A DNA stretch of 64,000 bases, taken from positions 610,786-674,785 of the forward strand of contig OZ287702.1 of assembly GCA_965649825.1 (NCBI GenBank). Direction: 5' to 3'. This DNA comes from Penicillus capitatus (lineage: Eukaryota; Plantae; Chlorophyta). Of the stretch, positions 1-63,050 are shown piece after piece. The notes beneath the pieces were generated by a model. That model was not told where the DNA came from, searched no databases, and saw nothing but the letters and a program-made list of their open reading frames with translations. The position numbers were made by a program, and so were the translations under genes. Positions within the stretch are counted from its first letter, which is position 1. Each line of letters opens with the position of its first letter.

Positions 1-987
1 GACACTGCAGCGTGCGTTCCAGCCGATCGGACCAAATGAAGGCTAACGAAAGTTCACACCTCCATGCCCTCAACACCTGCGTTGGACTCTGAGTATACTT
101 ACGATCAATGCGCTTCTCGTCAAGAATCCGCAAATAGAAGTAGTGTGTTGCCCGTTCACTTGTGGAGCAGCTTGAGACCACCGATCGTCGATCTCCTGAA
201 GTCGTGGGCATTCTACGCTTGTCAAACAGTTGTTTGCGCCTAGTTCATGCATTCAATCTCTGGCTGGGTTTCAGAACAATTGCTTGTGTTTTGATACTAT
301 AAAGTTTGACAGCAAAGCAAAAGACTTCGTTCGCGAGAGTGAGTTCCGCTGTGTTTCGAGTTAGAGGATTGCTACAAGAGAAATAAATTCGATCATCTGT
401 TGCCTGCAAGCTGACAATACGCACGATGTTGGCATAACTCGAGAGCACGCAGAATGAACTGCCTGTTTCGTCGTGTCTCGTGCAATTAACTCTTCGATTC
501 TTTGCTTATCGCGGAAACGACGAGATGGCCGTCAGCCGGCAAGAACGTGGAGTGCTCGATGTCAGTGAAAGGCGTTCGTCCATCTCGTCTCGCTGTTGAG
601 GTGTGCTTCTGGGCGTTGGAATAGGGAAAGGACCGTGTTCCTTGATTTCAACGCACAATGAGTGCTCGGAGGTCGAAGTTGATCGACGGATATACGATTC
701 TTTGCAACAACAATCCAAAAGTATTTGACGGAGGGTGACACGGTCCTTTAGTTTAAGTGGAACGGACATCTCGCATTTAGATTCACTTGCGTGACCATAC
801 CGACTGTAACAACTAAGATGTTAACTACAAAGATGTCAAACGACGGGACGTTGTAAGCAGAGGCCAAGTTTTCTTGCAATTCCATCCCCTCTCGATACAT
901 AACTTAAAGGCGTTAAACTTCTTTGCTCGATCGTCGGACGAGAAGCATAGAAAAAAGCGTAGGGTTTTGTGCGACGGTTAGGTAAAA

Positions 988-1240
988 GGGCAATAGTTTT
1001 TGTTCGGATGATGACCCTATCGTCGGCCCCCAAACTTAGCGCGACGTTGTCCTTTACCAGCCAGAACCCATCCAACTCGGCGCGGGATTGCCAGACACAA
1101 CCGGGTCAACTCTGATGGGACGTCCCTCCTCTGTGTCCGGCACAGGAATTAAACCCCCGCGGTCGTACTTCTCGAACTTGTCCAACTGCACCATCCGCAT
1201 TCGGGTCGATCCCCACAGTCGAGAAGACGCTGTCTCCAAC
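988..1240. repeat. Diverged partial third copy of the inner end of the ~2 kb repeat family (see 47285-49136 and 58005-60090)
   Basis: Aligns to 58014-58260, e.g. gaccctatcgtcggccccc-aactt-gcgcgacgttgtccttt and gaacccatccaactcggcgcggg-ttgccagac-caaccgggtcaac. Similarity decays after about 250 bp. Confidence 0.85.
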
Positions 1241-1526
1241 GTTTGCGCACCGGTGACGACTTCACCGACGACCTTTTGACGACTTAGTTCACTGACCACC
1301 CTACTACACCCGTGACAACTTCGCCGACGATTTCTGACAACTATGCCGTTCATTACCGTCTATTCAAGACAACTTCGCTGGAATATTTAAGCAACGAGAA
1401 GACTTAGCACTGAGCACTACAAAAGCTCTATCGATGACTCCGACCTTCACTAATATAGATTCTTGACGACTGTTAAGGATGTTCAAGCGAAGCGTAGCTT
1501 CTTGTGTGATATTTTATGGAAGGAGG

Positions 1527-16929: not shown

Positions 16930-16942
16930 TCAAATAAAACAA

Positions 16943-34721: not shown

Positions 34722-34844
34722 CCAAAGCGGCCAAGAGAAAACAGTAGAGTTAGGTGAGTCTCTTTCCCTGGCAGACGATTTGATGCATACGAATATCTAG
34801 TGCTTCAAGGCTTGGCTGCAGTATTATCAGACGAAGAGTGGTTT

Positions 34845-35560: not shown

Positions 35561-35920
35561 TGATCACCAATGAACATCGTTTGAGAACTTCAAAATCAGG
35601 CCAGTGGTCGTACGAACTACGACTCTGCAACTATTATATCGGCATTTCAAACGTGTCGCGCTGTCGCGAACAGACACGCTGGAGCGCGACGATCTTGAAA
35701 TCCGAGAGCAGAAACAAAACGCACCGTCTCCATTTTGTGTCTAGATGTGACAAAACGTCTACTTCCGAGCATTGTCCTTGCGGCTTCTCATCTCTGCAGA
35801 GACTCTGTCGGGTATTTGTTGCAGGTTTCCGTCGTTTGTCCACAATCGTCGAAAAGAGCAGAAAGAACAGAGAGACAAGAAACGGGTTTAGTGTCCGAGT
35901 TGCCTGAAGCCGGGAGGTCA

Positions 35921-38649: not shown

Positions 38650-41600
38650 TCAAGAGACGGACTCGGATGGAAGCAGACTTGTGGAAGCATCCCCTACCTC
38701 AGAATGCTGGTTCGAAGTTCTCCTGGACCTCGAAGATGCTGAAAGTCTGATCTTCTCAAAGGACTTCCCAATCTTCTTTGCTTTGTGAGCAAAATACGAC
38801 TTCAATACGGCACCACTGCTACCTCTTCCACAGTCAACACCCTCGCAGAGGAGCGTGTGCTTGATCTCGGTGAACTTCAACGTCAATAAGTGGTATCCAG
38901 CGAAAACAAAGACGCAGGTGTTCAAGGCGAAAACGAAGACGACCAGACACACTCGAACATAACTGGAAGTTGTGTTGGGGTCGTTGAGGACGACCCCTGC
39001 CATGATCGTCCATCCACTGACAAAGAGCGACAGGCCCTCCAGGAAGTTCAGTGGATCGAGCTCTGTCTGGTACGGCAGGAAGGTGAGATGGAGGTAGAGT
39101 GCCATCATGAAGACGCAGGCCGTGAGGATCCCTTGCAGGTTGCTGCCGAACTTGTAGGCGAACACGGAGATCACGGCGATCAGCGCCTTTCTGAAACTGA
39201 TGAGGCAGTCCCAGTACACGAACTCCTTCTTGAATCCGCTGATCAGAACGCCGATCGTTCCCTGGATCCACTCGGAGCCGAGCGCTTGCCTTTTCTGTGC
39301 GACGACCAGGACGACGGCCAGCACAATCGGATAGGCGATGACGAAGATGAGCAATGGGATGGCCAGCGCGTCGACGAGGATGGCGTGGCTGTCAACGTAG
39401 CATCGAACGGAGGTGTCCGCCACCCAATAGGTCGTCGTGCTTTCGATGCTGTCGAGCGAGACGGCGTCGTAGACGTCGATGCAGTAGAAGACGTTGGCGG
39501 CCGTCTCCGTCAGGGAGAGGTAAGAGACGTACAGGACGGAGACGGCAGTCAGGATGCATCTCTGGACGAGGTATCTCCACGGCCTGCGCAGCTTGAACGT
39601 GTTGTAGATCCAAAGTGTGCAGATGACGGCTGTAACGAAGAGGGGGATGAGTACGGTCAGCACCGTCTGTATGACGGATCTCGATCTCTCGTCGTCGTAA
39701 GGGAGCAGACACTCAAAGGATGATGTTGACGCTTCGGTCACTGTCCCGCTTATCCAATCTGCAAGATGCCAAAGAATGTCTCAGATGGAGCAGATGCAGA
39801 TGCGCATCGTTCTTACCCCATGCCTGCAAGAGATGAATGATGGATTTGGTCCAGTCCAGATCAAGCGATATCCCAGCAGACGCCGATTGCAGAAAGTTGA
39901 TTGTTATCTGCAGAGTATAACATAAACAAGTGAGGATGCACAGAACGTCAGAGAGTATCTACCTGCAGAACGAAAACGAATTTCTCCTTCGCACCCTGTG
40001 CAATCTCGGCGTCTTCCTGTGAATACGCGGCTCTGGTGAGGGCTTCCTGCACATGGGACTCCCTCTGCGTCGTCCTCAGCCTATCGATTCTGCGCATCCA
40101 CGTCGTCTTGACGTTTTTCAGATTGCCTCCGATCTGTTCCCAGGACGAATATGCTAGAAGGGCTACGGCTAACGCAATGGCCATGGTTATCCAAGTCCAG
40201 TGTTGGCAACGACGGCAGCGGGACTGTCCGATCTTGGCGTGGTCTTCCGTGCATGCTCCGCAGAGGACACCTCGGTATTCTTTGCCGCATTCTGCGCCTA
40301 CATACGCTTCAATCTCTTTGTTTGTCAGATTGCAGGTCGCCTCGTCATTGGTCACATTATTGTTCAGAACTTTTTCATCCTTTATCTTGGTCATATCCAG
40401 CTGACAGGCATCTGTGCGAAGACATCGTTGAACGTGATGTGAACAGGGGAATGCATTCCAGTATCCAGCCTTTGGCAGCACATACTTGCCAGAACAATCA
40501 GCGTTTTCTGGACAGACGGTGCAGATTTGATTTTGGTTTTCTGGATGGAAATTGTAGTGACCGGGTTTGCATACGACGCAACCTTTGTTGTCATCAAAGG
40601 GGACTTCGTTGATCACACAAGATCGGATGTTGACAGATAGCGTGACGTGTTCTTCGTTCAGATCTGGGACAATCAAGGTCGCCGTGTACTTGCCTGGCGT
40701 CACCAGCGGCGGGCCGACATTGATGTTATCTTTCCCAGATGTCAGGTTACCGACCAGGTCGTTCGGCAGGAGACCGTCGTCCGACACCAGAACTGCTCTG
40801 GCGTACGACAAGTAATCGGGCAGATGCACCTCGTCCCACTCGCCAGGCTCTATCCTTGCAACTCGGGATCCTCTTCTAGCTGGTCCCTGTCCATAGTGAT
40901 CGTACATGGAGACTTCCACAACTGGGAGATCGACGACACTCTCACGCTTTCCCAGATCATATGCGTCTCCTTGCCTCAACAAGATATGCGTCCCGTTCTC
41001 ATAGTGCAAAGTGACATGGTAACCTAGTGCCCGTGTGGCAATATGGCGTCCATAGCCACCTTCCCCCACTTTGTTGCCTTCCATTAATTCGGGCATAGGA
41101 TTCTTCGCAGATGATGCAATTGCTAAATTCTGATCGGGGCGATCTTCCGTGTGGTTTTTGAATGTGAGGCCGAAAAAGTCCATGTGGTGACGATTTCTTG
41201 CAAAGATCGCACCGCCAGCTACCGAAGCATGATTTTCTATAAAGCTAAGCCTCTCACAGTGAGAATCAGTAGGGTATACTGGGCCGACATACTCTTCTGA
41301 GAACCCTGTCACAAACGAAGACTCGAAGAAAACGGCACCTGGACAAAATTGAAGAGTCTGAGAAACTGCTATCGAATGATAACAAGGGAAAGCTTACCTC
41401 CAAAGGCTGCTCTGTTTCTGAAAAATGAAACCGCAATTAAGAAGAAAAAAAACGTATCATCCTTCGTTATCGTGTACTCGATTGGGATATGGATGAGAGC
41501 GATGGCACCACCATACAGTTCAGCCTTATTCGTAGAAAATGTGCATCCTTCGATCCGGAGTCCGATTCTATTAATACCTACCGCCATTGCACCCCCGATT

Positions 41601-44077
41601 CTAGCCCTGTTGTCAACAAATGTCGAGTGTTTTGCGATGATATTTCCGGAGTCAACGAAGGTAAGGACTGCTCCTCCAGAAAAGCTGGCGCTGTTATTCC
41701 GAAAGCTGCATCTTGTCATGACAACTCGCATAGGGATTTTGGCATAGATCGCCCCGCCTCCTGACGCAGTGTTGTTCTCGAATCTGCAATCGGTCACCTC
41801 CAGGAAGCTTTTCTTGTCACTAGGGGAAGAGTAATAAACGGCACCTCCAACGCTCCCTCTCCTCGTCCCCACTGTATTCGCAGTGAAATTGCTTCTCTCT
41901 ATCCTCGCAAACTTGGTATGGTCAATGTGAAGAGATCCCAGCACCGGTTTAGTGTTTATACCATCTAAGGCATTGTTGCTTTGTGCCGTGCAATCTGATA
42001 CGTTAAGAGAGTTGATACTCGTCACGTACAGAATTGAAGCCGCTACACTTGCCCTAAAACTATTATTGACCCTGTTGCCGATAAACTGACTTCCTCTCAC
42101 TTCGACATCAACATTGCTTCCAGTCACGAAGACTGTCATCCCGAGGAATATGTTGGATGAGAATTCACTGTCCACCACACTCAACTTCGAAGGCATGGGA
42201 TTGGATGAACTGGTTGACAAGAAGATAGCGTGCCCATGTAAAACAGTGGAACAATCGAGTTTGTGGAACACTGCTTTCTCAAACCGGAACTGACCGCTGC
42301 TGTCCACAAAGCGAAATCCGGACCCCAGAGCATTGCCCGCTCCGGTGTACGAGGAATTCCTGGATGTGAACGTCACATTGTGCGTGTTGTCCAGGACAAC
42401 CATTATGATACGATCACTGCTGTCATTGTGGCTAGCATCGAACGTCCGTTGTTTTCCAAAATCTACGAATTCCAACAGGACATGCCCGTTGTGAAAGCGA
42501 TCGATCACCAGCAAGCCTTGGGGTTGGTTTTGCACTACCACTTTTTTCGTGTCAAATCGGTTGAATGTGTCAAAGTGGCTATTGGAGATGTTGATCGCTG
42601 ACGTCGCATCGGCGGAACGGTTCACCAAAATGAGTCCTCCACAGGGATAGCAGTCCTGTTCAAAGTAGGAATCCCTGATTTGAAGACGCTTAAGAGAAGT
42701 GGCAAGGATGGCCGAAGCCACGTTGGCAGCATTGTTATAGAAGCTGGAGGAGTTGATGACAGCGCTGGATCCATCTCTCAAATCGAGGCATCCTCCTGGA
42801 CTGCCGTAGCGGTTTCCTTTGAATTCAACGCCCGTCATGGAGACAATGCTTCCAGAGGCAACGATAACGGCGCCGACCACACCAGTGTTGTTGAAGAACA
42901 ATGAATCCCCACTGATCGTCAGCGACCCTTCATCGACTGACACAGGATAGCCAACGTTGTTGACGATGGAAAGATCCTTCAGCGTGCTCGCAGATGTTTT
43001 GGGAAAGTAAAACACGGCGTTCTCCAACGCATGCATCTCGGCATCGTGATCGGGAGAATTGTTGGACCTAGATCGATCGCCACTCACACGATTGCTGCCA
43101 TAACAATAAAACATACTTAAAAATGGCTGGATCGTTTGTGTAGGGAATCCCCTGCGACACTCCCTCATCAGAGACTGCTTTGTCAAAGGTCAGTGGTTGA
43201 AGCGATTGAACGTTCTCGTTGACGACGATGTTCTCAAGATCGTTCAGGTGACCAAAAATGGAACCGAGATAGTATTGATTTTGCCGAAATTTGAAACCAT
43301 ACATTTTGATTTCGACACAGGACGGATCTTGAACACGGAATCCTGCGATGCCGCCTGGATTGCTGTTGTTGGTAAAGTCGACCGTATGCATCTCCAAAAC
43401 AACATCGTCATCCCTGGATCGATCGCAGCTGATCTCGATGACACTGAGGTGGTAGAACGGATCGGCGAAGACACAGTTTTGGATAGAGATGTTTTCCAAG
43501 ACCACGTCGACATCCCTAAAAAAAGAAAAGATCTACAACAATATCGTGGCAACACTGCACCGACCTGATGACGAAGAGAGAGTCGTTTGGAGGACACGTT
43601 AGAGTCGCTTTCGTCGACATATCCGGAGAGCGTGAGGCTCGAATTTCCAGACGTTTTGAAATTTCGATCTGTCTTCGCGGTTGGACCGGCGTTGAAGTGT
43701 CTAGGTAAATGGCATCGCCATCTGAGGCACAGTCGACAATGTCATGCAGGTCGTGGTCCGCAAAGAACGTGTCGTCGACGTGCCATCTACGCGCAGCGTC
43801 GTCAAGGATCTTTTCAACAATATCTTCAGACAGCTCGCACGTACCACCTAAAACAGAACTGCCTTGGTGACAAGCATAATGCAGCAGTTTCTCAGATTTA
43901 GGCGTACGCATGTCCCCTCGTCGACAAAGAAAGGCAAGGGCAAAGATCGGGTGTTTTGTCAGTAGCAAAAAAAATTGATGCATCACCTGCGCTTTGCTGT
44001 GCTCTTGTTGAGCAAGCGACTAGAAGAACGGTCCCTGCTAGGTACAGCAGCAGAGACTCTGATGTGCGTCTTCGCAT
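38650..44077 (-). CDS. Receptor-like membrane protein B (beta-helix repeats + Cys-rich + multi-pass TM), multi-exon
   Basis: Signal peptide MRRRTSESLLLYLAGTVLLVACSTRAQ. ORFs 43516-43986, 43068-43505, 41369-43186, 39948-41312 and 38650-39741 join by GT-AG introns. F.NN.A..GGA repeats, CVINEV...CVVCKPG...C.VCP.NADC, and FVYWD.LISFRK. Confidence 0.85.
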
Positions 44078-47284: not shown

Positions 47285-49136
47285 CTTGCCAGCAAAGAAA
47301 AGTTAGATAAATCCTTATTGTGTCTGATTCGGCCGCAGTTTCTCGGCGACTGTCGACGAATCGTATGCGAGAAGGTGCCGCATCTGGCAAAATCAGACAG
47401 GCGATGAAGGGTCCTTATTAATCCAATATGCCCTGTGCGAGGGTAGAACCCTCGCGGTTTCTTAACCCAAGAGGTAGAGGATGGAGTCGCTAACAGGACG
47501 CTCAAATCGTAGAAGGTCACAGAATGTGACAGAAAGGGCAGCACAGAAGACGCAATATGCCCTGTGCGAGGGTAGAACCCTCGCGGTTTCTTAGCCCAAG
47601 AAGTAGAGGATGGAGTCGCTAACAGGACGCTCAAATCACGGAAGCTCTCAGAATGTCCACACAATGCCGCAGAGGCTGAGAGAAGAAGGACACGCACAGC
47701 AACCCGCGGAACGTCTTTCTTGATTCTCAGCTTCGACGATGCGATCGTGAGACACAGGAGAGCTGTAAAGCATCACGCTCGAAGAGCACCTGCGCTGTCG
47801 AAGGGATGCCGGCTGTCAGCTTGCATACACCAGAGTTTCAGAGAAAGGCACAAGCAAGGAAATGATTCCTCCGCGTTCTCCACCTTCTGTAGCCAATCAA
47901 CAAGTACCCAATGGCGTTTGAAACCTGGCAGGAGGCCATTGCCACTGCCAGCTGCCGTCAGAGAGTGAGGATGGACGTCCGTCCGCGTCATGTGCTCAAC
48001 AGGAAAAGGGATAGAACAACACGTCGAGCTAAACTGCCACGACGGCGAAGAACCCACGAACACAGCAAGTGGAGATAGCATTGCTGTTTCAGCATTCTGC
48101 AACTCAAACGGATATATCTTGTCTGTCATTCGCATCGGGTTTTGTCGCGTTGCGAATAGACTTCCTTCTGTGCTGCCTACAAAGAGGCAAAGACACTGTA
48201 TTCGTTGCCATGCACCATACAGATTGCCACAATAGTGGATCGGATCGATTTTACTGTGTGGTGAGAGACTTCTGAACAACGCAATCCACCCTGGAACCCG
48301 ATACGGACTGGAAACCACACTGACCTGGAGTCCGACACAGAACCGCGCTTGTTGCTTCACTGGACTTGCCACCGTGTTATCCATGCCGGTGCAATGTGTG
48401 CCGCCATCGTGAAAAGGGTATCCTGGTTTCGAGAGGTCTCGACCGCGGCACGTGGCCCCGACAGCGGGCAAAGATATACAGTTTGGAAAGGAACGTACTG
48501 CCAGGCGATCCCCGGGTGTGCCACTTGCATCGCCTATCTCGATCGAGACGCGTTGTGCCAAAGGGGTAGCTCGAAATCGATGTTGTCGATTATGTAGCCT
48601 ACGGAACGCGTCTGCATACTCGACAGACGACACACAGACAGCGCCCGTCCCACATTTCGACCCACACAGTTAGCAAGCAGCAGTAGCAGACAGAACCGCA
48701 ACGGCGTTTTGTCGGTCGAGGAGACGAACCGCACCTGTTGTCCGGCCCGCCGCTCAGTATTCGGCGAGCGTGTATGGCGGGCGATCGGGCGCGTGGCTCT
48801 TGATGATATGATTACGTCGCATCGTACAAATCGACCTACCGTTTCCGTCCGTGCAGAGGAAATTTTCGGGGGGGGTACAGGTTTCGGAGAACACGTCTAC
48901 CGTCAGGATCCACCCGGAGCGCATGGTGCAGCTGGACCATATCGAGATGTACGATGCAGGGGTGGATCCTTGCGCTGGACTCAGAGGAGGGTGTCCCGTC
49001 AGTGTTGACCCGGTTGAGTCTGGCAAGCCCGCACCGAGTTGGATGGGTTCCGGCGGGGAAAGGACAACGTCGCGCCAAGTTCGGGGGCCGACGATAGGGT
49101 CACCACCCGGACAAAAACTATTGTCCACGCGACTTT
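47285..49136. repeat. Left arm of a long inverted repeat (1852 bp); unclassified repeat element
   Basis: Its reverse complement aligns over the full length to 58005-60090. A sampled 100-bp window had 7 mismatches, mostly transitions. Confidence 0.95.
47425..47637. repeat. 129-bp tandem repeat, about 1.65 units, in the left arm
   Basis: aatatgccctgtgcgagggtagaaccctcgcggtttctt...gagtcgctaacaggacgctcaaatc is repeated. Confidence 0.9.
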
Positions 49137-50201
49137 ACAGTTGGTATATTTTGCGCATCTTGCTGAGCATGTTCCTTTCCGTTTGTGATGTACATATAGG
49201 CTCAGTATATCGATCGAATGGATTTTTCTTGTAACAAACAGAGGTTTGCCAGACGTACTCGGACTTCTGTTGTTTTATTTAGGATTTTCGCATGAAGATT
49301 CTTGTAAGTATATCCAGAAAGACGGTCCTCTGCTTAGACAGCTAGAACAAAGCGAAGCCGTGAGTTGGTCGTGTTTCCCTTGTCTTCTTTAGCCTTCTTC
49401 TGCAGGGAGCTGAGTTCCGTTTTTAATCGAGATATCCGCAAAATCCGTTTGGAAGTCGCAGAAATTAATGAAAGCTATGTATGCTCTACGGTCTTCACAA
49501 CCGCCACTTGACGGAGGTTCAAGATACAACACGAAAAACGATCTTCCTCATATCACCGAGCAAATTGTTCAAGCACCCGCTGCGCTTCTGCTAGAATCCT
49601 ATCCGCCGTCAAGTTTCACCAATACGTAGGCAACGATCGCTTTTGTTTGACCTACCACGTCTATGTTGTGAGTGATTCCGCCGTAAGCATAAGCTTCGAC
49701 TATTTAACACTTCATGCTACATCTGCCAATTACCAAGAATGTTTCCAGTACTACATCTTGTTCACTGTTAAGTTCACCTAACCAGCGAGTCGCGAAAGCT
49801 AATTGAAGTTGCCGATGGATTCATCTCTCGGGGTGTGATGAGCGAGCAGCGCTCTCAGAGAACCATCGATGAAACAGTAGCGCGTGTTCACAAAAAACGG
49901 CTATTACAAATGATCGTTTACCTGCATTCTATTTGCGATGGCAGGTGTTTACGATCGACTACCGTTTGGAAAACCGATGTGTCTGTTCGCTCGAAGAAAG
50001 TGAGGGAGAACCATGGCTGTCTGCCAGGGCTTCCTGCCAACAGAATCAGATGACAAAATATGGTGCCGAGTGAAAGTAAAACAATTCCTGTCGTGAAACA
50101 AACAGTCGTTTTCAAACTCATGTTGCTCATTGAAATTGAAGTCTATGGAAAAGTCATCAAACATCGGAAAAAACATTCGACCGGACACTGGAGTCGTCAG
50201 C

Positions 50202-53200
50202 TTAAAAAAATGGCATCAATCGGTTGATCTCACATTTCAACCAAACAAAAAAAACTCTCGACATCCCCCAATCGCACTCCAAGGAAACTGTCCCGTTTTC
50301 TATCAGGAGCAGTTTCAAGTATACAGCAGCGTATTCGGAAAGAAGATAAACGAAAACCAGGAACACTGTAACGTTGAGCAGGCCGCATGCTGCGGTAGCT
50401 GCACGGATGCTCGTCTGCGAAAGTGAGTCGGTGCTTTTTAGAGATGCTGTAATGAGCGTTGTGATGAGAGATGTAAACAACGAACCTATTTCGATTCTAT
50501 TCAAAGTATGAAACCTCTTGCGGTAGGGCATCGCTGCGATATGCGCTATCGTAGCGACAGTAATGAAACCAGCAACACCGATGATTGGGATCTGACTGTC
50601 AAAGCGTTGAGCGCAGAAAATCAGGAAGGCGATGATGACCTTCCGCAGCGTTATGGCGACTTCCCAGTAGCGACGCTTTCCCAGTTTGTAGCTACGGTAC
50701 AGGAACCCCATGATCTGATAGAACCAACTGTTGCCATCGGTCAATCGTTCTTCGGCTGATCCGAGCGCCAGAACAAAGAAAATGAGAAGTCCGCCGTAGA
50801 TCACAACGACGAAGAAAGTCATCAGCAGCGTCAGCATCAGATGGTCGTCTTTGAAGCACTCCAGACTCGTGTCCACTGCCCAGTAACTGACTTCTTTCGT
50901 TTCCACATAATTCGTAGAGTCGTTTACGGCGATGCACAGGACAGTGCTGAAAGCTGTTTTCAGAACGGAAACAGCAGTAAGGTACCACAGAACCATGATC
51001 GATAGCATGCATCGTACTGCCAGGTAACTCAGAGGTCTCCCGACTCTGCGGAAGACAGTGACCATTGTCCAGAAGACTGCCATAAAAATGAACGAGAGAA
51101 TCGGGATAGCGCATGCACTGATGATCAATGCCATGACTGTTGGATGCACATGCGGATCATCTTCAGTAGAGAGACAAACAGCCGAGAACCGGGTCGTTTC
51201 CGACGCAAGACCCCCCATGAACTCTGCATCCATCGCAGCTTCGATAGCATAAGACAAACGCATTTGATTGCTTACCTGCTACTTGAGCAATAATTAACAT
51301 GGAAATGGCCCACCCAACATCCACCGAAACAATCAAGACAGTCACTTGGATAAAGTTCAACGTGATCTGCAACAAGATCACGAAGCGCAGGCAGGCTTGC
51401 AGATTATTAACCTTGAGCATTTCAACGGCTTTCCACTTTGCCAGGACTGTTTCACTGGCAGGTATTCCGTCGTCATCGTCGATCTGTCGGATGCCTTGAC
51501 TACGAATGCTAGAAGACTGCGCTTCTTGTGGCGCTCTTTCTTCTGATCTGTCGGTTGGTGAAAGCTCCGGCAGCTCAATAGATCGACTGCGCCATTCACA
51601 GCCAAGAGACACCGCCATCTGTCCATTGCTCATTGTACTCATATTCCTTCTGGTCGCATTGCTCATTGTACTCAGATTCCTTCTGGTTGCATTGCTCACT
51701 GTACTCAGATTCCCTCTGATTGCGACGGCCGATAACACCAAGAGAATCACAGATGACGTGCATATTACTAAGAGATTCCCGACCGTTGTCGGGCATACCT
51801 CGCAGCTTGAAGAAAAAGTATTCCCGTGCCCTTTCTCACAAGATCCGCACAATGGACCCGTATGACCCTGCATTCGATAACACCGCTGACTACTTTAGTG
51901 CTTGAGAAAATAAACTCACCGGAGCACACTGAGCCTTCCTATACTCCTCGATCTGCTCATAGCTGATGTTACAGGTATCCGTGTTCATTGCCATGTCTCG
52001 CATCGTTTCATCACGAGTATCATACTCACAGGCATGAGAGGTCAGACATCTTTGAATGTCCTCAGAACACGGTACGCTCTGCCAATATCCTTCGTTCGGG
52101 ACGATGCTTGTCGTTTCACAGTTTCCGTTTTCGGGGCATGGTTGACATTCTTTTGCTGTGGGATCGAAGTTATAAGAAGTGCTGCTGCACTTGCTGCAGA
52201 TTCTGTTTTCAGGAACAAGCACTTCTCCAATCGTACAGTTCCGCACTTCGACAGTGATCGTCAAGTCCTCCATCACCTTTTCATTGAAAGAGATGGTCAA
52301 GTTGTAGATTCCGGGGTAACCAAAGCCCACCATCCTCGGATAGGTGACTCGATTCTCCCTGACAGAGAGGGAAAAGTCCCCGACCAAAAACTCTTCTGGC
52401 GATGTCAGCGTGGCAGTGATTTCGTGATAACTGATCGGCGATTCTTGATGCAGCCCATCCAACAACCGGACAGTGATTGTTGGCAACGGAGTGCCACTGG
52501 CGTAATTCTTAATTACGTACGTCTCCCCAGTCGACGCTTCTGTCGTCTCTCCTCCAGATTCAACCATCACCATTGCCATCGAAGCGAACGAACCAACAGT
52601 TGAGCCAGACACTTTCGCGTTGTTCTCTTTCCACGAAGCACAAAAGTCTTTTTCTGAATGGATGCTGCTCAGCATCATCGATTCACTCTCGTTGAGAAAC
52701 GTCAGACTCCAGTCAGGCTCAACCGAAGAGCAGTCGGTGCGAATGGCTTCTAAGTACCCTGTCAAAATCGCCCCACCATACCGACGTGCTTTATTGGCCA
52801 CGAATCGACTGTTGATGATGGCGGCGAATGCACAACTGGAGCCATTGTTTAAGCATTCCTCAATGCCCATGGGATTCAAAAAATACAGTCCACCTAAGGG
52901 GACAACAAATAAGATTTCTTTCGTGACTCTCTAGCACACCTGCAGCTTTGGCTTTGTTGTTTACGATGTCGCTTCCTTCCAGCTGGAGTGCCACTTTCTG
53001 CGTTTCGCCAGCCTCAAATGACATGGCTCCGCCGTTACACTTGGCAACATTATTGCTGAATATGCACCCAGCACATAAAACGCTGCTGTTTTTTGCTTTC
53101 ATCGCACCGCCGTCTTCTTCGGCAAAACAATCTGATACCGTCAAATCTCGCGCTGTCACTGTGGACGAATCTGATTTGATCGCGCCTCCGCGTTTGGCAC

Positions 53201-56200
53201 GGCCTTGAGTCATGACTGTGCTTTCGACGAGAACTGAGCTTTGGGAGGATGCGTAGATAAAACCGCCTGAGCCTGATGCACTCCCGTCGATGAGATACGA
53301 GTTCGAGATTCTCAAGCTCGTTCTTTCTGCAGACAACGTTCCTCCACGCGCAGAAGCAGAATTACCCACGAAAGTCACATTGCTGAAACGTCCACGATTC
53401 AATTCGGTATGGCAACTCGCCCCTCCATTCTGCCCGGCTTCGTTGTTCTTGAATAACGTGTTATCTATGATCAGCAATGGGATTGAGAATGTGTAAAGGC
53501 CTCCGCCGTTGAGAGCCTTGTTTCTTTCAATCGCCATTTCCGTCATGGTGACATTCGAGGCATCATCGGCATAGAATCCGCCACCGTTATCATCAGCAGT
53601 GTTCCTCTCGATGGCCGTGTCTTTCACATCAACTCTCGACGCAGTAATGTGAATACCACCACCGTGACGCCGAGCTCGATTTCCTTGAACGGTTGTGGCG
53701 TTCACATGGATAGTAGACTCGTCTAGAAAGATGCCGCCGCCGTCAAGGATGCAATTGTTTCCTTCGACAGTCACTTCTGTCACGTCAGCGTCTGAGTCAT
53801 ATAGATACATGCCGCCACCCAATTCATCGCAATGGTTTTTCTGGATGATCGTTTCGCTAACACTGACGTTTGAGCGTTGCGCGAAAAAGCCGCCGCCCTC
53901 CTCATCAGCGGTGTTTCCATCGAATCTCACCCTTCTCACGATGACGTTTGAGCGTTCTGCGTCGATGCCGCCTCCGTCATCGGCAGCACTGTTTTTCTTG
54001 ATAACCACATCTTGTACACGGATACTTGAACCAGTAGAGGAGATTCCGCCACCATCTTTGCCACAATGATTTCGTTTAATGACTGAACCCCTCACAACGA
54101 TATTAGATTCGTCGTGCGCAGAGAGGCCTCCGCCATTTCCGCCTGTGGCATTGTTATCGGCAATGGCAGTATCTTCGACACTGACAGTAGAGATATGCGC
54201 ATAGATGCCTCCTCCATCGTTGTCACAGGAGTTTTCCTGGACGATCGCCTTCTTGACATTCATTTTCGAAGAATGCGCATGAAGGCCGCCGCCATCGCGG
54301 GCAGCCCGATTTTTCTCAACGGTCGTGTTGCTCATATCAACTTTCGATTCGAAGGCATAGACGCCGCCGCCGCCTCCACTGCTCACAATATTTCCGCGGA
54401 TGGTCGTTTCTTGCGTGATAAGAGATGTGTACTGCACAAAAATACCAGCGCCGTCATCGCCGGCACTGTTTCTTTCGATAGTTGCTCTGATGACTGTGAC
54501 GTTTGAGGCTTTTGCGCAGATGCCGCTGCCATCATTCCCAGCTCGGTTTCCGTCAATGACCACTTCGCTCAAAACAACATCAAAAGAGTCTCTGGCGAAG
54601 ATACCACCGCCATCGCTTGTCGCGTTGTTGGATATGAAGTCCGTGTCTCTGATCACCGTCGACGTGTTTTTCAGGTAGACTGCACCTCCACTCGGCGAAG
54701 TCGCACATTTCTGAACGGTCGTGTCATCGGCAACAAATTCTGTATCCTCCAGACGACGGCATCTTCCTGCGACTCCAGCCTTGTTTTGTTGAAAAATGGA
54801 TTCATCAATTCTCAGAATCGAGTCGATGGCATTAATGGCGCCTCCGGTGCCATCTGCTCTGTTAGCGTCAAACCGACAAAGGCGGATATGCATGGAAGTC
54901 TTTTCTCGCAGAAAGACGGACCCCTTTTCTTTGGCAACATTCTCCAGAAACGTGCAGTTCTCTGCGAGGATCTCTGATCTGCTTGCGCTGATAGCTGCAC
55001 CATAACGCGCTTCGTTTTGTCGAAAAGTGCAATTGCGGAGCAAAACGACCGTATCTCTGAAATCCATGCACGGGCTGGTCTTGTCTCTGTGTCCAGCGAC
55101 AGTATTCTTGGAGAACTCAGCCGTCGACAAGTTCAGAGAGCCTCCGATGATGTGAAAGATGTGAACATGGTTCCCCGCAGCAACGATTCGGTCCACGGAA
55201 GTGCGAGACTGTCCAGAACTAAAGAAGATGGAGGATCCGGATCCGGATCCGGATCCGGATGGTTCGATTTGCCGATTCCGCCGTACGGAGAGATTCCGAA
55301 GTCGATTATCCTTGGCCATCCAGACACCGCAGACGCCGACGCCGTCGCAGTCGTTGTCGTGGAAGTCGAAGTCGTCAACTTCGAGAGCAAGACAAGAACT
55401 GATATCGACCTTGACTGCCACGGATCCATTCAGATGATTGTTTCTGAATTCAACATGATACAATCGGACTCTTCCTTCTCTGCCGAAGGAAGGACATGAC
55501 TCGACACTGACGACAGACTCCAAAGGGAACTCAGTTTCGAACGAGCATTTCTCGAAGACGAAATTGGCGAGTGTCACGTTTGCACTCCTGCAAATGCAAC
55601 GCTGTTGGGTGACCATCGAAAGGCGAAGTGTGTTTGCTACCTTATCGTAAACACTCCTTCGTTCTGGCCCGGACACGATATCGTCGTTCTGCGGGAATGG
55701 TTAATGACGCTCTTCGATTGTTCCTCATTCCCAGCGAAGCCATTCACTGTCAGTGGCCATGAAATGATGGAACGAGATGAAGGTTTGATTGTCTTTGTAA
55801 CGTTAAAGACAACCGAATCTCCAGTCTTCGTGCAAATAATAATGCGTTGAAGATCATTTTCGACTTCGTCGAGAACAGCGTCGTCCACCAACCACGTTCC
55901 CGTTTCGTCAGCAAAGCGTTTCTTCTGTTTCTCGCTCAGAAGGCATTCGTTTACTAGACATCGGCCCACGTCCGGTTGCGGATGGGGAAAACGGGAAGTT
56001 GTTGCGAACCTGCCGGACTTATGAAATCTTCTCGCTCTGCGCCGATTTTGCGAAGCAGCGCCCGTTTTCCGTTTTCCCTCTGTACACAACACAACGTATA
56101 ACTCTAATGCGCGTGTAAAACGGAACTAGGTGAACCTTTCCGTTGAGATGACCGGTGGATCTTGTGTTCGACAGCAAGAGGGCTTCGCTGCCTCTTGCGT

Positions 56201-56390
56201 TGCTAGACCCTAAGTGCGTTTGAGTAAGCTGCAGAAAGCAAAGTGCGGAAGAGTACGTACTGCTTTCTTCATGAGATTTGACCAGCTGTGCACGACTCGG
56301 ATGATGCCACTGTCGATCCTCCGCACAGTTTACGGGCAGGAGGTCACTTCTGAAAGCGAGAAACCACAGAAAAACGGTTCCGACACACAT
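50202..56390 (-). CDS. Receptor-like membrane protein C (long beta-helix repeat array + Cys-rich + multi-pass TM), multi-exon
   Basis: Signal-like MCVGTVFLWFLAFRSDLL at 56390 (tentative). ORFs 55637-56092, 52860-55676, 51890-52879, 51163-51873 and 50202-51263 join by GT-AG introns. Many GGG(I/L)YA..S repeats, CTIGEV...CSKC...CQPCPENGNC, and GFLYRSY...YWEVAITLRK. Confidence 0.85.
51624..51722. repeat. 33-bp in-frame tandem repeat x3 inside receptor C
   Basis: cattgctcattgtactcagattccttctggt(c/t)g x3, encoding RGNLSTVSNAT-RRNLSTMSNAT-RRNMSTMSNG. Confidence 0.92.
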
Positions 56391-58004
56391 GTTTCGTTGC
56401 GCGAGCACTCGAGAACGAGGATTTGTCTGTGCTGTGTGGATATAAAATGCTGCTACGGTCTTTTCAGAATGAAAGGTCCAGCGACGGAAGATCAAACGAT
56501 TGCAAGTCTGAACAAACGCACAAGGACTTAGATCGTCGAAGATGCTGCTCTCAATGTGTTGCATTGATACGGGAAGCCAGTCGCCCGTGTAACTGTCGCG
56601 TCAGAATCTGAATGAAGCTAGCTGGCTTGGCATTCGTTCTGCCCGGCGGTCCTAACCATCGTTTCGCGGTGGATGGCCAGGACAATGCGATCTGAAGCGA
56701 TGAGCTTCTATTGCTAGCACACCTGAGTCATACACTTTATCGGAAATGTTGGAAGATCGACGAATGCTTTACCGTTTTTGCGATTTGACGAGATGCGCCC
56801 TTTCCGAAAGGAATGAACGTTTCATGTCAACGGAGAGATGAATGTAACCTCGATCGAGCCTATACGCACAGCGATTGTGAACGCTCTACAGCAGTCGGGT
56901 GGGAACAACGGAAGGCGATTAAATTGCGCTTTGATGCAAAAAAGTGACACAAGCGTAACACAAACACCGAACCATCTATCAGACATCTACAGCGACGCTC
57001 GACAAATAACTGCATACCAGTGGATAGTATTCAACCTGTAACCTGTGGGCCGGTGTAGTCAATGATGTTCAAATCCGTTAAGCCTTCAGCTCTGTCGATT
57101 GGCACTAAATGATAGATATGTAACCCCGCGTTTATACCCATGAAAGTGCGATACAGAAAACTGTAAGCGCTTGACAGCGTCCCTTCCACGCTAAACATAG
57201 AAAGGGAGAGTTTACCGACAACGCGAGTGCACATTGTCTTCGCGATTAGAGAGGGCGTTCGTTGTGAGGGATCCACCGTGTCGAACACAACGCCACTCGC
57301 GTTGGACGATATTGAATCAATCATCTAGCAAGGGAGAGATGTGACGGCGATCTGTTGTCTCTGAGAGATCGATCAGCGCAGAGTCCTCAGTGCAACCAAA
57401 TCGCTTTAGTTCGGCAACGCCATTGATGCTTCGTCCAATGAGCAATGAACGAATGCGAAACAACAATTCATAACTTCTTCTTTGTTGTGTTTGTCCGATT
57501 GCGTCGCTAACGCAGTTTGCTCAAATCGAGTTGTCATTGCTTTGTGTATGTGCTCTTGAGATGTCAATGCACATCTTCTTTTGACTTTATGTCGAACACC
57601 TTAAGCGCAGATACTTCAGCAATGTGTATGCGACATGAAGGTTCTCTTTCGTTTTGCTTCTCTATATGTAGCTACGACTTAAACAGCAACGAAGTAGACG
57701 GTGCGTGCACAGCACATATGCTATCATCGTCTCTTCAGGTTCCATTGGATTCAAAACTTGCGATTGGTAGGCATTCAAAGTCAACAGTGTTCGTCAGAAT
57801 ACAAACGGATCAGCTTGAAGAACTTTAAAATGTGAAAACTACTCCACTGATGAGTGCAATCGATGAAGAAGAGGCGAAACTGTTTTTCCTTCGGCAATGA
57901 AAGTCGTCAAAGTACCCACTCGATGAAAAAACGCAACTGTCCGACATTAAGAACCCGCAAGATATGGTCGCGTTTTCTGCGACTTTCGACAGCTGACGGA
58001 TCCA

Positions 58005-60090
58005 AAAGTCGTGTGGACAATAGTTTTTGTCCGGGTGGTGACCCTATCGTCGGCCCCCGAACTTGGCGCGACGTTGTCCTTTCCCCGCCGGAACCCATCC
58101 AACTCGGCGCGGGCTTGCCAGACTCAACCGGGTCAACACTGACGGGACACCCTCCTCTGAGTCCAGCGCAAGGATCCACCCCTGCGTCGTACATCTCGAT
58201 ATGGTCCAGCTGCACCATGCGCTCCGGGTGGATCCTCACGGTAGACGTGTTCTCCGAAACCTATACCCACCGAAAATTTCCTCTGCACGGACGGAAACGG
58301 TAGGTCGATTTGTACGATGCGACGTAATGATATCATCAATGGCCGCGCGCCCGATCGCCCGCCATACACGCTCGCCGAATACTGAGCGACGGGCCAGACA
58401 ACAGGTGCAGTTCGTCTCCTCGACCGACACAACGCTGCCGCTGTTCTGTCTACTGCTGCTTGCTAACTGTGTGGTTGAAACGGGGGACGTACGCTGTCTG
58501 TGTGTCGTCTGTCGATATGCAGACGCGTTCCGTAAGCTGCATAATCGACAACATCGATTTCGAGTTGCCCCTTTGGCACAACGCGTCTCGATCGAGATAG
58601 GCGATGCAAGTGGCGATTACACCCGGGGATCGCCTGGAAGTACGTTCCTTTCCAAACTGTATGTCTTTGCATGCTGTCGGGGCCACGCGCCGCGGTCGAG
58701 ACCTCTCAAAACCAGGATAGACTTTTCACGATGGGGGCACACATTGCACCGGCATGGATAACACGGTGGCAGGTCCAGTGAAGCAACGAGTGCAGTTCTG
58801 TGTCGGACTCCAAGTCAGTGTGGTTTCCAGTCCGTATCGGGTTCCAGGGTGGATTGCGTTGTTCAGAAGTCTCTTGCCATCCAACAGAATCGATCCGATC
58901 CACTATTGTGTCAATCTGTATGGTGCATGGCAACGAATACAGTGTCTTTGCCTCTTTGTAGGCAGCATAGAAGGAAGTCTATTCGCAACGCGACAAAACC
59001 CGATGCGAATGACAGACAAGATATGTTCGTCTGAGTGGCAGAATGCTGAAACAGCGATGCTATCTCCACTTGCTGAGTTCGTGGGTTCTTCGCCGTCGTG
59101 GCAGTTTAGCTCGACGTGTTGTTCTATCCCTTTTCCTGTTGAGCACATGACGCGGACAGACGTCCATCCTCACTCTCTGACGGCAGCTGGCAGTGGCAGT
59201 GGCCTCTTGCCAGGTTTCAAACGCCATTGGGTACTTGTTGATTGGCTACAGAAGGTGGAGAACGTGGAGGAATCATTTCCTTGCTTGTGCCTTTCTCTGA
59301 AACTCTGGTGTATGCAAGCTGACAGCCGGAATCTCTTCGAGCGTGATGCTCTGTACCTGTCCTGTGTCTCACGAGCGCGTCGTCCGAAGCTGAGAATGAA
59401 GAAAGACGTTCCGCGGGTTGCTGTGCGTGTCCTTCTTCTCTCAGCCTCTGCGGCATTTGTGGACATTCTGAGAGCTTCCGTGATTTGAGCGTCCTGTTAG
59501 CGACTCCATCCTTTACTTCTTGGGCTAAGAAACCGCGAGGGTTCTACCCTCGCACAGGGCATATTGCGTCTTCTGTGCTGCCCTTTCTGTCACATTCTGT
59601 GAACTTCTACGATTTGAGCGTCCTGTTAGCGACTCCATCCTCTACCTCTTGGTTGACAAACCGCGAGGGTTCTACCCTCGCACAGGGCATATTGCGTCTT
59701 CTGTGCTGCCCTTTCTGTCACATTCTGTGAACTTCTACGATTTGAGCGTCCTGTTAGCGACTCCATCCTCTACTTCTTGGGTTAAGAAACCGCGAGGGGT
59801 CTACCCTCGCACAGGGCATATTGCGTCTTCGGTGCTGCCCTTTCTGTCACATTCTGTGACCTTCTACGATTTGAGCGTCCTGTTAGCGACTCCATCCTCT
59901 ACCGTTTGGTGAAGAAACCGCGAGGGTTCTACCCTCGCACAGGGCATATTGGATTAATAAGGACCCTTCATCGCCTGTCTGATTTTGCCAGATGTGGCAC
60001 CTTCTCGCATACGATTCGTCGACAGTCGCTGAGAAACTGCGGCCGAATCAGACACAATATGGATTTATCTAACTTTTCTATGCCGGCAGG
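58005..60090. repeat. Right arm of the long inverted repeat (2086 bp)
   Basis: Inverted copy of 47285-49136. It is longer mainly because of two extra 129-bp units. Confidence 0.95.
59482..59950. repeat. 129-bp tandem array, about 3.65 units, hairpin-rich
   Basis: Units start at 59482, 59611 (128 bp), 59739 and 59868 (partial). Each has GCGAGGGT-TCT-ACCCTCGC (one variant), and full units have TCACA-TTC-TGTGA. Confidence 0.95.
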
Positions 60091-60314: not shown

Positions 60315-61819
60315 TTAACAGCAATGTTGACGATTGTTTCCCAATGTTCTCAATCTCAACGCCTGGAGTTTGATGAAGCCCTGGGCATCTTCTTGATTAT
60401 AAAGCCCTTCGTCGTCTTCGAATGACGAAAGCTTTTCATCATAGAGACTGAAACTGCTCTTTCGTCCGACAACAATGACGTTGCCCTTGTAGAGTTTCAC
60501 CCGGACAATGCCAGCAACATACTTCTGCGTCTCGTCGATGGCAGCTTGAAGGGCGATACGTTCCGGAGAGAACCAAAATCCAAAATAGACCAACTCAGCA
60601 TACTTGGGCATCAATTCATCCTTCAAATGCATCTCCCCTAACACAACCCCTTTGACGCATGCACACAGAGAGTGGCCATTGTGGTGGACCTCTGTCCAGA
60701 GTGATGCTTTCCATGGCGCGACGGGCATGGAGAAGAATGGTCCCGCCAGGCGTTTCGTAGACGCCACGCGATTTCATTCCGACGAATCGGCTCTCGACAA
60801 TATCGATTCGGCCGATGCCGTTTCGACCGGCAAGATCATTGAGTTTCGTCAAAATCGTCGCAGGATTCATACGCACGCCATCGATGCTGACAGGATCGCC
60901 CATTTCAAACTCGATATCCACATACGTCGCCGAATCTGGAGCAGCTTCGGGAGAGACCGAACGCGTAAACATGTCCTCCGACGGCTCCACCCATGGATCC
61001 TCAAGAGACAGCCCTGCAACAGCAGACACAGATGACGACCAGACGTCCTGCATCTTCGATGCCTTCGTAAGAGATGTGTAGCAAATTGGCATCTGTCGAG
61101 AACGGAGGTTCGCCTCTCTTGTGCGCCGGCACTCGGATACGATTCTCTTCGGCAAATTGAATCAGCTTCGTGCGACTCGTAAGATCCCATTCCCTCCAAG
61201 GAGCAATGACTTTGATATCGGGCTGTAGAGCATAGTAGCCCAACTCAAATCGAACCTGCATCACAGCCACAGACGGCGTTTTGATCAGATTCGGGCGTCG
61301 CGAGATCGTTACCTGGTCATTGCCTTTGCCTGTGGCACCATGGGCCACTGCGTCTGCCCCGACTTCGCGTGCTATTTCTACTTGTCTTTTGGCGATGAGT
61401 GGACGTGCGATCGAGGTCCCCAAGAGATAAGTGCCCTCGTAGACCGCATTGGCTCGAAAGACCGGGAAGACATAGTCCCGAACGAACTCGTCCTTCAAAT
61501 CTTCGATATAGATCTCACTGGCTCCCATCTTTTCAGCATTCTTTCGTGCCGGTTCGAGTTCCTCTCCTTGGCCCAAATCCGCTGTAAAAGTGACGACCTC
61601 ACAGTCGTAGGTGTTCTGCAGCCACTTGAGAATCACAGATGTGTCCAGACCGCCACTGTATGCCAAGACGACACGATTGACTTCGCGTTTGGCAGTGGCC
61701 GTCGCTTCGATCCTCGCGATCCGACGGATCTTTGTTCGCGGCCGTTTTCGACGCGTATGCGATCGCGTCTTCGGCAGTGCCCGTGCCGATCCGATGCGGA
61801 CGTTGAGGGGAGATAGCAT
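60315..61819 (-). CDS. ASS1: Argininosuccinate synthase with N-terminal transit-peptide-like extension, multi-exon
   Basis: [81 protein letters not shown] and GFWFSPER. Confidence 0.97.
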
Positions 61820-61846
61820 CGATCTTGTGGGCGATCAATACGACAA

Positions 61847-63050
61847 ATGACGATCGCTTGCCGACATGCTTCACTGCGTCGTGTGTTTGTGCCATTCATT
61901 CGACGTCTGGCCTCGAGCGACGAGGAATCGATCGTTACTTCGCTTGGCACGACGACACATATCCCTGCTCCCCACGTCGAGCGGCCAAAAGTCTCACCCC
62001 TGACGGAACTCGGCAGCAAACCCAAAGAGGAGGAAGAGGAGAAGGAAGTGATCACGTTCTTGGGGTCAGGAGAGGCGGAACCGAAAACTGAGAGGCGGAA
62101 ACCACAAGATCGGGTCATTACGTGGCTGGGCGAGAAGCCAGAAGGAATCGATGAAGCATACGACGCAGCGGACACTGTGAGGAAGCTGCGAACAGAGCAG
62201 GCAGAAGAGAAGACGGAACGAAAGAAACGAGCAGCGTCGTATCCTGCCCTCGAAGGACTTCCGATTGAACTGATACCGAAATCCGTACGGCTGCTGCGGC
62301 CGGAAAGTGTAAATGAACCACTCGATCTGCACGAGGCCCTTCGTTGCATCATCGTCGCCTCTATGCATGTTAAAGAACAGTGAGATGGTGTCTGTTTAGG
62401 AGGAGGCCTCGAAAGATTACGACAACACTGTGAGAATCGACATCTGTCTCTCCGTCGACCCGCGCAGGGGCGATCAGTTTGTCAGAGGGTTGTCTGTTCT
62501 GCCGCATGGAACGGGTCGAGCGCCACGGATCGCTGTTTTTGCCGAGGGACATCATGCCCAGGCGGCCAGAGAGGCAAAGGTGGAGATCGTGGGCGGGGCA
62601 GAACTGATTCAGGAGATCCTGGACAGTAAAGGCGCCAATGTCGAGAAGATCGACAAGTGTATTGCCACACCCGCCATGATGGCGGCCGGTATGTCAAAAC
62701 TCGGAAAGATTCTGGGCCCACGTGGACTGATGCCCAATCCTCGTGCTGGCACACTGACGGAGAACATCGAGGAAACGATTAAGAAGCTGCGCCAGGGCCA
62801 GATCGAGTTTCGCATCGATCGGCAGGGGATTCTTCGCGCAACGATCGGCAAAATCAGTTTCGGCATGGAGAAGCTCATGGAAAACTTCATCGTCTACGGT
62901 AGCGATGTCATCCAGGCGCGTCCTGGCGTTTTCCAGAAGAAGCCATTGACAAAGTTCCTCAAACAAATCACGATCTCCACCAATATCGGACGCGGTTTTC
63001 CGATCTCCGTGCCATCCTATGCCGCGCTATTAACCGATAAGGCCTCGTGA
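61847..63050 (+). CDS. MRPL1: Ribosomal protein uL1, probably mitochondrial; 2 exons
   Basis: Arg-rich presequence MTIACRHASLRRVFVPFIRRLAS. An intron at about 62353-62399 joins to DQFVRGLSVLPHGTG, VGGAELI, KLGKILGPRGLMPNPRAGT and GQIEFRIDRQG. Confidence 0.9.

Follow-up and report, generated by a model that had tools for sequence, protein, structure and literature searches.

Background

In well-studied genomes, recurrent inversions mostly use inverted low-copy repeats around genes as their substrate, and the FLNA-EMD inversion at Xq28 is one example of an inversion mediated by such repeats. In the palindromes of primate sex chromosomes gene conversion takes place from arm to arm and the spacer can be inverted. 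The arms of these palindromes carry the genes themselves, have lengths of 9 kb to 1.45 Mb and share more than 99% identity. In green algae, inverted low-copy repeats around genes are hardly documented to our knowledge. Here we analyzed a pair of inverted repeats, named arm L and arm R, which enclose a receptor-like gene (receptor C) in the green alga Penicillus capitatus. The stretch of DNA under study, referred to as the window, comprises 64,000 nt (assembly GCA_965649825.1, contig OZ287702.1, positions 610,786 to 674,785, forward strand). Based on our analysis, the arms are probably a non-coding inverted low-copy duplication, palindrome-like with a spacer of 8.9 kb, whose copies exchange sequence, rather than the ends of a transposon.

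Polymorphic inversions in humans arise through inverted segmental duplications, for example HsInv0209 with arms of 7 kb and 94% identity (PMC3961182). The locus described here shares with the human inverted low-copy repeats the kb-scale inverted copies of about 94-96% identity, which bracket a unique gene-bearing segment and are free of transposon hallmarks. In both cases patches of near-identity are the likely exchange sites, and exchange leaves shared and swapped variants. In contrast to the human repeats, the present locus was colinear in both of the two haplotypes, its arms, at about 2 kb, are shorter and contain no coding sequence at all, and it belongs to a green alga. With the primate palindromes it has in common the two arms with a unique spacer, the concerted arms, and reciprocal exchange as a route to inversion of the spacer. 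It differs from them in its short arms (1.85-2.08 kb), which are homogenised only near both ends, and in that the gene is located in the spacer.

Structure of the inverted repeat

The pair of inverted arms was recovered by a repeat search and by self-BLAST of the window, and the match is too long to be due to chance. The arms, the interior and the repeated parts of the arms are located as follows:

47287..49136, plus strand: left arm (arm L), 1850 nt, non-coding
49137..58004: unique interior (spacer), 8868 nt, in the same orientation in both haplotypes
58005..60088, minus strand: right arm (arm R), 2084 nt, reverse complement of the left arm
47424..47656, plus strand: 129-bp tandem array of arm L, 1.8 units, with a CGAGGGT/ACCCTCG hairpin in each unit
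59463..59951, minus strand: 129-bp tandem array of arm R, 3.8 units
48787..49135, plus strand: inner module of arm L, about 330-350 nt, terminating with the hairpin at 49109-49126
58006..58352, minus strand: inner module of arm R, homologue of the inner module of arm L
49109-49126: inner hairpin GGACAA-N6-TTGTCC, 6-bp stem, 10 nt from the inner end of arm L

An earlier reading of the sequence alone (here referred to as the original prediction) had placed the arms around receptor C with coordinates that proved right to within 2 nt. It had likewise described an outer 129-bp array and a small inner hairpin, both of which are present, and an arm identity of about 93%. We found the arms to be 93.8% identical with gaps counted (BLASTN, 1718 columns) and 95.8% identical by substitutions only (77 mismatches in 1823 aligned columns of a global alignment), in line with that figure. 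The 77 mismatches consisted of 51 transitions and 26 transversions. Indels of 256, 19, 4, 3, 2, 1, 1 and 1 nt separated the arms. The largest of them represents two extra 129-bp units and accounts for almost the entire difference in arm length.

The array begins 137 nt inward from the outer end of the arm and makes up only 13-23% of an arm; the other ~1.5 kb is unique sequence. A 30-nt motif of the 129-bp unit occurred six times, all within the two arrays (0 expected by chance). The outer edge of arm R lies 227 nt past the stop codon of an argininosuccinate synthase gene.

Divergence between the arms was uneven, with 2.0% in the outer part, 1.6% in the inner module and 5.7% in the middle (chi-square P=3e-4). 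Within the middle it reached 6-10% per 100-nt window.

The arms are considered non-coding. An open reading frame (ORF) of 286 aa was present in arm L (47773-48633, minus strand), and its copy in arm R is broken by a stop codon and a frameshift. Approximately two-thirds of the nucleotide differences within this ORF alter the amino acid. The small indels between the arms (19 nt and below), the broken ORF in arm R and the mostly amino-acid-changing differences all point to non-coding DNA. In the six frames of the arm no Pfam domain was found. Rfam (gathering threshold on the whole window, permissive E-value on the arms) and ARAGORN detected no RNA or tRNA genes in the arms.

A short sequence near the inner edge of arm R may be mentioned as well. 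The 8-mer GCGACTTT at 57980-57987 is the same, in direct orientation, as the end of arm L (final 8 nt) and is separated by 18 nt from the inner edge of arm R. Together with AAAGTCGT of the arm it gives a small hairpin spanning the boundary of arm R. Its occurrence is probably due to chance (roughly 0.005-0.02 expected); it could also be a trace of the duplication junction.

Exchange between the arms in two haplotypes

A second haplotype of the locus, haplotype X, was located by a search with the membrane-domain ORF of receptor C, which found a protein of 99% identity. This ORF was used instead of the beta-helix ORF, for which the protein search was dominated by bacterial repeat proteins and did not recover this genome. 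Haplotype X (locus L003) is situated on a contig of 6.93 Mb with 344x coverage (ENA ERZ25074695). The window itself is referred to as haplotype W. Positions 38215-58633 of the window were 100% identical to 20,419 nt of a contig of 24,157 nt with 23x coverage from the same sample (L004). The whole of this contig corresponds approximately to 38215-62371, the end at 62371 being extrapolated. With coverages of 23x and 344x, a minor strain or haplotype is present in the sample at about 1:15, and W and X are two co-occurring variants of one locus. The divergent 'bubble' between them covers a further receptor-like gene (receptor B), the arms, receptor C and the argininosuccinate synthase gene.

Haplotype X was colinear with the window from 40185 to 61472. 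It carried both arms with the same four boundaries and the same orientation of the interior. The sole large difference at the locus was found in the array of arm R, which has 1.8 units in X, two fewer than in the window (257-nt gap). The copy number of the 129-bp array is therefore polymorphic in arm R.

The unique DNA of W and X differed by ~1%: by 1.44% in the left intergenic region, by 0.94% and 2.0% in the interior apart from the gene, by 1.0% in receptor C and by 0.87% in the right flank. Between the orthologous arms, divergence reached 3.4% (arm L) and 3.95% (arm R). Pooled, this amounts to 3.67% compared with 1.44% in the flanking unique non-coding DNA, i.e. a 2.5-fold difference (Fisher P=6e-14). 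All six pairwise identities of the four arms (W_L, W_R, X_L and X_R) ranged from 95.2 to 96.6%, the orthologous arms being hardly closer to each other than the paralogous ones.

A total of 38 arm substitutions were informative and fell into three types. These were: 16 orthologous sites (O; L=L', R=R'), 13 concerted sites (C; arms equal within a haplotype and different between haplotypes) and 9 swapped sites (X; W_L=X_R, W_R=X_L). Along the arm they were arranged in the order OOOO CCCCCCC X C X O X C X OOOOOOOOO XXXXX OO CCCC. This gives 13 runs where 25.7 are expected, and none of 100,000 permutations had so few (P<1e-5). When the sites of the tandem array were left out, clustering of the runs persisted (P=5e-5). 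Three blocks can be delimited:

47519..47956, plus strand: concerted block, arms identical within and differing between haplotypes
48884-49091: second concerted block, arms identical within and differing between haplotypes
48685..48743, plus strand: swapped block, 5 substitutions and a 3-nt indel, with orthologous blocks on both sides

As read from the two haplotypes, this mosaic shows that the arms pair and exchange sequence, and that gene conversion homogenises both arm ends within a haplotype. It likewise shows that at least one short tract has been swapped from arm to arm. On these grounds, reciprocal exchange is probable and inversion of the interior plausible. The swapped block may represent the pattern expected from two inter-arm crossovers at different points, i.e. 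a flip followed by a flip back. The concerted blocks coincide with the least diverged stretches of the arms, namely the outer part and the inner module. The seemingly conserved modular ends are thus conversion tracts and not constrained transposon termini. From the divergence in their middle part, the duplication of the arms seems to be several times as old as the split of W and X.

The inner module and its copies elsewhere

The inner module is the sole part of the arms with homologues elsewhere. Within the window only one further copy was found:

980..1257, minus strand: third module copy, situated 2.3 kb downstream of receptor A, with 84% identity to the arms across 225-235 nt

This copy is older than the copies in the arms. 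An exhaustive HMMER search with a module-covering ORF against 1.84 billion cluster representatives returned two clusters. One was the own locus and the other a protein of 68% identity (P0281). The latter and its cluster mates derive from a separate sample (ENA ERZ26696514), presumably of a related species, where they are encoded at three places on each of two contigs of ~1.1 Mb (ctg303781 and ctg303794).

In this related alga, the six places (L008-L013) represent three contexts of ~20 kb, located 44-49 kb apart, with a common repeat of 1.9 kb. The copies of the repeat were 96.6% identical, and it is the sole sequence common to two differing gene contexts, A and B. Approximately 330-350 nt of it are homologous to arm positions 1479-1835 with 70-73% identity:

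10011-10343 of L008-L013: module in the related alga, low-copy and non-syntenic

A core of ~120 nt (GTTGACCCGGTTGAGTCTGGCA..CCCGCGCCGAGTTGGATGGGTTCCGGCGGGGAA) was ~95% identical across the two algal species, while the surroundings could not be aligned. The third context, C, is in opposite orientation and joins the left side of B to the right side of A, each over at least 11 kb. The duplicated segments meet in the low-copy repeat, and the arrangement resembles the outcome of segmental duplication and non-allelic recombination. The right end of the 1.9-kb repeat cuts into a Patched-like exon, and context B thus carries a gene fragment.

The other module copies terminate in CCTAACCGTCG, which is missing from the arms. 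By this sequence they run ~10 nt past the arm end, so that the module is cut at the inner arm boundary, as expected of a duplication breakpoint. From this comparison, the boundary would be easier to explain as a duplication breakpoint than as the terminus of an element.

The nature of the module was examined as well. No Rfam matches were obtained at a permissive E-value for the arms, the copy at 980-1257 and the module of the related species, and the module ORFs had no matches in Pfam and PDB searches. Folding gave z-scores of -2.6, -1.2 and +0.98. In RNAalifold, three independent sequences yielded only 3-4 compensatory pairs (covariation term -0.16), and one clear compensatory pair was present in the stem GGACUCA/UGAGUCU. 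A structured RNA is not supported by these values. The module could be a short interspersed nuclear element (SINE)-like or miniature inverted-repeat transposable element (MITE)-like element or the core of one, a conserved non-coding element or a non-coding RNA.

Search for further copies of the arm body

For the ~1.5-kb body of the arm including the 129-bp array no homologues were found in 315 kb of fetched loci. Three paralogous receptor loci were among them, and these contained neither homology to the arms nor a long inverted repeat. The original prediction had raised the possibility that other genes of the family are flanked by the same arms, which did not hold for these three loci. The 90%-identity clusters of the arm ORFs hold this locus only, out of about 15 billion proteins which include two assemblies of this and the related alga. 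Scans of metagenomes and viral contigs with the module motif and of metagenomes with the motif of the 129-bp unit gave 0 hits. In total, the sampling of arm copies covers 315 kb of loci, the protein clusters and the metagenome and viral scans.

Junction ORFs were considered as a test for an inverted haplotype and rejected. They end inside the near-identical module, and the calls for the window's own junction ORFs did not share these starts.

Receptor C and the receptor-like family

Receptor C is the only clear gene of the interior, as had been predicted. It encodes a multi-pass membrane protein with Chlam_PMP repeats on the minus strand, and the remaining ORFs of the interior had no Pfam hit. 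Its parts are:

50202..56092, minus strand: receptor C, including the probable upstream exon
55637-56092, minus strand: probable upstream exon
52860-55676, minus strand: ORF block with Chlam_PMP beta-helix repeats
51890-52879, minus strand: second ORF block
51163-51873, minus strand: ORF block with Cys-rich DUF7630 and a 33-nt repeat
50202-51263, minus strand: ORF block of the membrane part, 6-7 hydrophobic segments

The gene was intact in W and X. A single indel of 1 nt was found at 52926, in the short, probably intronic stretch that separates two ORF blocks. In the comparison of W with X, dN/dS (the ratio of non-synonymous to synonymous substitution rates) was 0.89 for the beta-helix part (26 non-synonymous vs 9 synonymous changes), 0.38 for the second ORF block and 0.47 for the membrane part. 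Judged from these ratios, receptor C is being maintained, with a membrane part under purifying selection and a fast-evolving ectodomain. Two short repeats are found within the coding sequence. An in-frame unit of 33 nt is present 2.9 times at 51624-51718, just before the membrane part, and encodes NxS/T-rich 'NLSTVSNATRR' motifs. In the beta-helix part, (GGATCC)x4.7 at 55233-55260 encodes a Gly-Ser run.

The closest paralogues of receptor C that were found are 42-54% identical in the membrane domain. Among the paralogues found, with at most 54% identity, there is thus no recent donor copy, contrary to a model of capture and movement. The distance of the arms from receptor C is about 1.1 kb on the side of the stop codon and at least 1.9 kb on the upstream side, measured from the last clear coding block (55637-56092), which places them outside the gene and its flanks.

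Two further members of the family are located in the window:

3535-8704, minus strand: receptor A
38650-43186, minus strand: receptor B

Receptors A, B and C share 27-35% mutual amino acid identity, the orientation on the minus strand and the same build, which consists of Chlamydia-PMP-type beta-helix repeats, a Cys-rich part and a C-terminal ORF with 5-7 hydrophobic segments. The label 'receptor-like' seems fair in view of this predicted build. In the beta-helix part of receptor B (41185-42685), W and X differ by 7-11% compared with ~1% nearby, and several small indels are present. Exchange among PMP repeats or paralogues may have produced this hypervariable ectodomain, or else diversifying selection.

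Alternative explanations

The arms resemble known inverted low-copy repeats in their structure (1850 and 2084 nt, 95.8% identity, no transposon hallmarks) and in their concerted evolution, with the 13 concerted and 9 swapped sites lying in blocks. Several points weigh against a low-copy duplication with exchanging arms. An inverted interior was not seen in 2/2 haplotypes, both of which come from one sample. The original prediction had named a single orientation among the findings that would contradict it, and only one is present in the two haplotypes examined; two haplotypes are too few to exclude an orientation polymorphism. The swapped block is only 59-140 nt in size and could be explained without inversion, by symmetric heteroduplex or by two opposite conversions in different chromosomes followed by an allelic crossover. 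Sharp boundaries at all four arm ends are also expected from two insertions. A rare non-autonomous element family with few distant copies may exist beyond the loci and protein clusters sampled, and the test by ORF clusters is indirect because gene calls are sparse on these contigs.

Transposons leave distinct traces. Foldback elements have a target-site duplication, termini built largely of tandem subrepeats, and a dispersed multi-copy family with variable middles. Pack-type elements (Pack-MULE, Pack-CACTA) share their ends with an autonomous family, have a target-site duplication and carry captured gene fragments with a parental copy. Helitrons begin with 5'-TC, end with 3'-CTRR after a hairpin and insert between A and T. 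At the present locus no target-site duplication was found for either arm or the composite, and no direct repeat of at least 3 nt lies within 6 nt of the outer boundaries. A terminal inverted repeat within a single arm was absent. The arm starts with TGCC and ends with ...GACTTT, which is not the TG..CA of a long terminal repeat (LTR). LTR retrotransposons and solo LTRs were rejected based on these ends and the lack of a 4-6-bp target-site duplication. Despite the hairpin 10 nt from the inner end, the TC and CTRR ends of a Helitron were missing and the flanking bases did not fit. No transposase domain was present in the arms (six-frame Pfam) or in the ORFs of the interior. The original prediction had likewise found neither a transposase nor a target-site duplication.

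The original prediction had proposed, as one of its readings, two independent insertions which now permit flip-flop inversion. The part concerning recombination of the arms is backed by the mosaic sites and the 2.5-fold divergence, and nothing shows independent insertions. In such a scenario an unclassified non-autonomous element of ~1.9 kb would have inserted twice in opposite orientation on both sides of receptor C, with the ~330-nt module as its conserved end. It could account for the four sharp boundaries, identical in both haplotypes, and for the recurrence of the inner module in the window and in the related species with its conserved core; a subterminal array and a terminal hairpin do occur in some DNA transposons and Helitrons. 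We regard it as unlikely, since a target-site duplication, a terminal inverted repeat, canonical LTR or Helitron ends and further copies of the 1.5-kb arm body in the sampled sequence and ORF clusters are lacking, the arm end is not the end of the module, and the seemingly conserved termini are accounted for by the concerted blocks. A single Foldback-like or Pack-type cassette of 12.8 kb, which captured receptor C between terminal inverted repeats of ~2 kb, is scarcely credible. Like these elements, the locus has long inverted termini, a tandem subrepeat close to their outer ends, no internal transposase and a host gene between the arms. Unlike them, it has no target-site duplication, its array is subterminal and confined to a small part of the arm, and its cargo is a complete multi-exon gene of ~6 kb with its flanks, whose best paralogue is ~50% identical. 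Neither a second cassette, a donor copy, other family members nor an autonomous partner was found in the 315 kb of loci and the ORF clusters, and the arms, with a divergence of 4-6%, predate the split of the haplotypes. Foldback and Pack-type capture as put forward in the original prediction are thus not supported, the former because of the missing target-site duplication and of subrepeats which stop short of the termini, the latter because of the absence of both transposase and target-site duplication and of the complete cargo.

The arms might also be a source of long hairpin RNA, in which read-through would give a double-stranded stem of ~1.85 kb and small RNAs that silence the region or the module family. 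Given their 95.8% complementarity, the arms would fold back on each other in any transcript that includes both, and such a role would be compatible with the structural interpretation given above. It is nevertheless very improbable in view of the 8.9 kb between the arms, a receptor C that is intact in both haplotypes and, at dN/dS of 0.38-0.47, is not decaying as a silenced gene might, and arms without a sign of selective constraint beyond conversion. Finally, inverted duplications are known to arise in long-read assembly, by a chimeric join or a mis-collapsed haplotype. Here the chance of such an artefact is next to negligible: the arms are 4% diverged with several indels and a unique spacer of 8.9 kb, and the same structure is found in two independently assembled contigs (344x and 23x) which differ by 1-4% throughout.

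Proposed origin of the locus

Under the interpretation as an inverted low-copy duplication, an intergenic segment of ~1.85 kb would have been copied in inverted orientation to the other side of receptor C. The edge of the copied segment would have been located about 10 nt inside a pre-existing dispersed module of ~330 nt. This copying presumably took place well before haplotypes W and X separated. Since then, pairing of the arms has led to gene conversion at both ends, to the short swapped tract and to the change in copy number of the 129-bp unit. Crossing-over between the arms would occasionally invert receptor C by non-allelic homologous recombination: crossing-over between inverted repeats inverts the intervening DNA, and receptor C is thus exposed to occasional inversion.

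As the arms lie outside receptor C and its flanks, an inversion would flip the complete gene together with its own flanks. It would exchange no coding or promoter part, and inversion alone would leave the product unchanged. Furthermore, no recombinase domain was found in the arms or the scanned ORFs of the interior. There is no sign of a programmed switch. Most likely, the structure is a passive by-product of local duplication which can create an inversion polymorphism and disturb allelic recombination locally. A more far-reaching view, which we consider quite improbable, is that the pair of arms is maintained by repeated flipping of an intact seven-pass receptor gene. This would be a eukaryotic flip-flop at the scale of a gene, altering the chromatin or enhancer context or suppressing allelic recombination in the surroundings of a fast-evolving receptor, with the ~330-nt module as a preferred exchange site or as an unrecognised RNA or SINE-like element.

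Neighbouring genes and local duplication

The argininosuccinate synthase gene adjoins arm R, has introns of ~60 nt and is arranged head-to-head with a ribosomal L1 gene. The spliced protein shared 86% identity with a green-algal protein of EukProt and 81% with the proteins of Bryopsis sp. KO-2023 and Ostreobium. Together with the gene pair described below, these matches place the alga among the chlorophytes close to Bryopsidales. The top match of this search (P0121), a bacterial protein with an internal duplication, was discarded as irrelevant. The head-to-head pair (60315-63050 of the window; 8115-12061 of locus L002) is conserved in Bryopsis sp. KO-2023, with no synteny beyond the pair.

A family of LRR genes is present in the window as well:

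16447-19271, minus strand: LRR gene, inverted with respect to the following copies
29683-37990, plus strand: three tandem LRR copies

The copies were 71-77% identical and represent an older inverted duplication within the window. Together, the tandem and inverted LRR duplicates and the duplications of at least 11 kb in the related alga, one of them inverted, indicate that local segmental duplication is common in these genomes.

Significance

The locus is a compact, sequence-resolved example in which conversion from arm to arm and a swapped tract can be read from two haplotypes. It also gives reason for caution, since long inverted repeats with 'modular ends' are not necessarily transposon termini; the conserved ends found here are conversion tracts. 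The repeats adjoin a rapidly evolving family of receptor-like genes. Without an inversion polymorphism, the structure would be an ordinary segmental duplication. If the inversion polymorphism proves true, the locus would offer a tractable system for non-allelic recombination and the evolution of receptor genes in algae.

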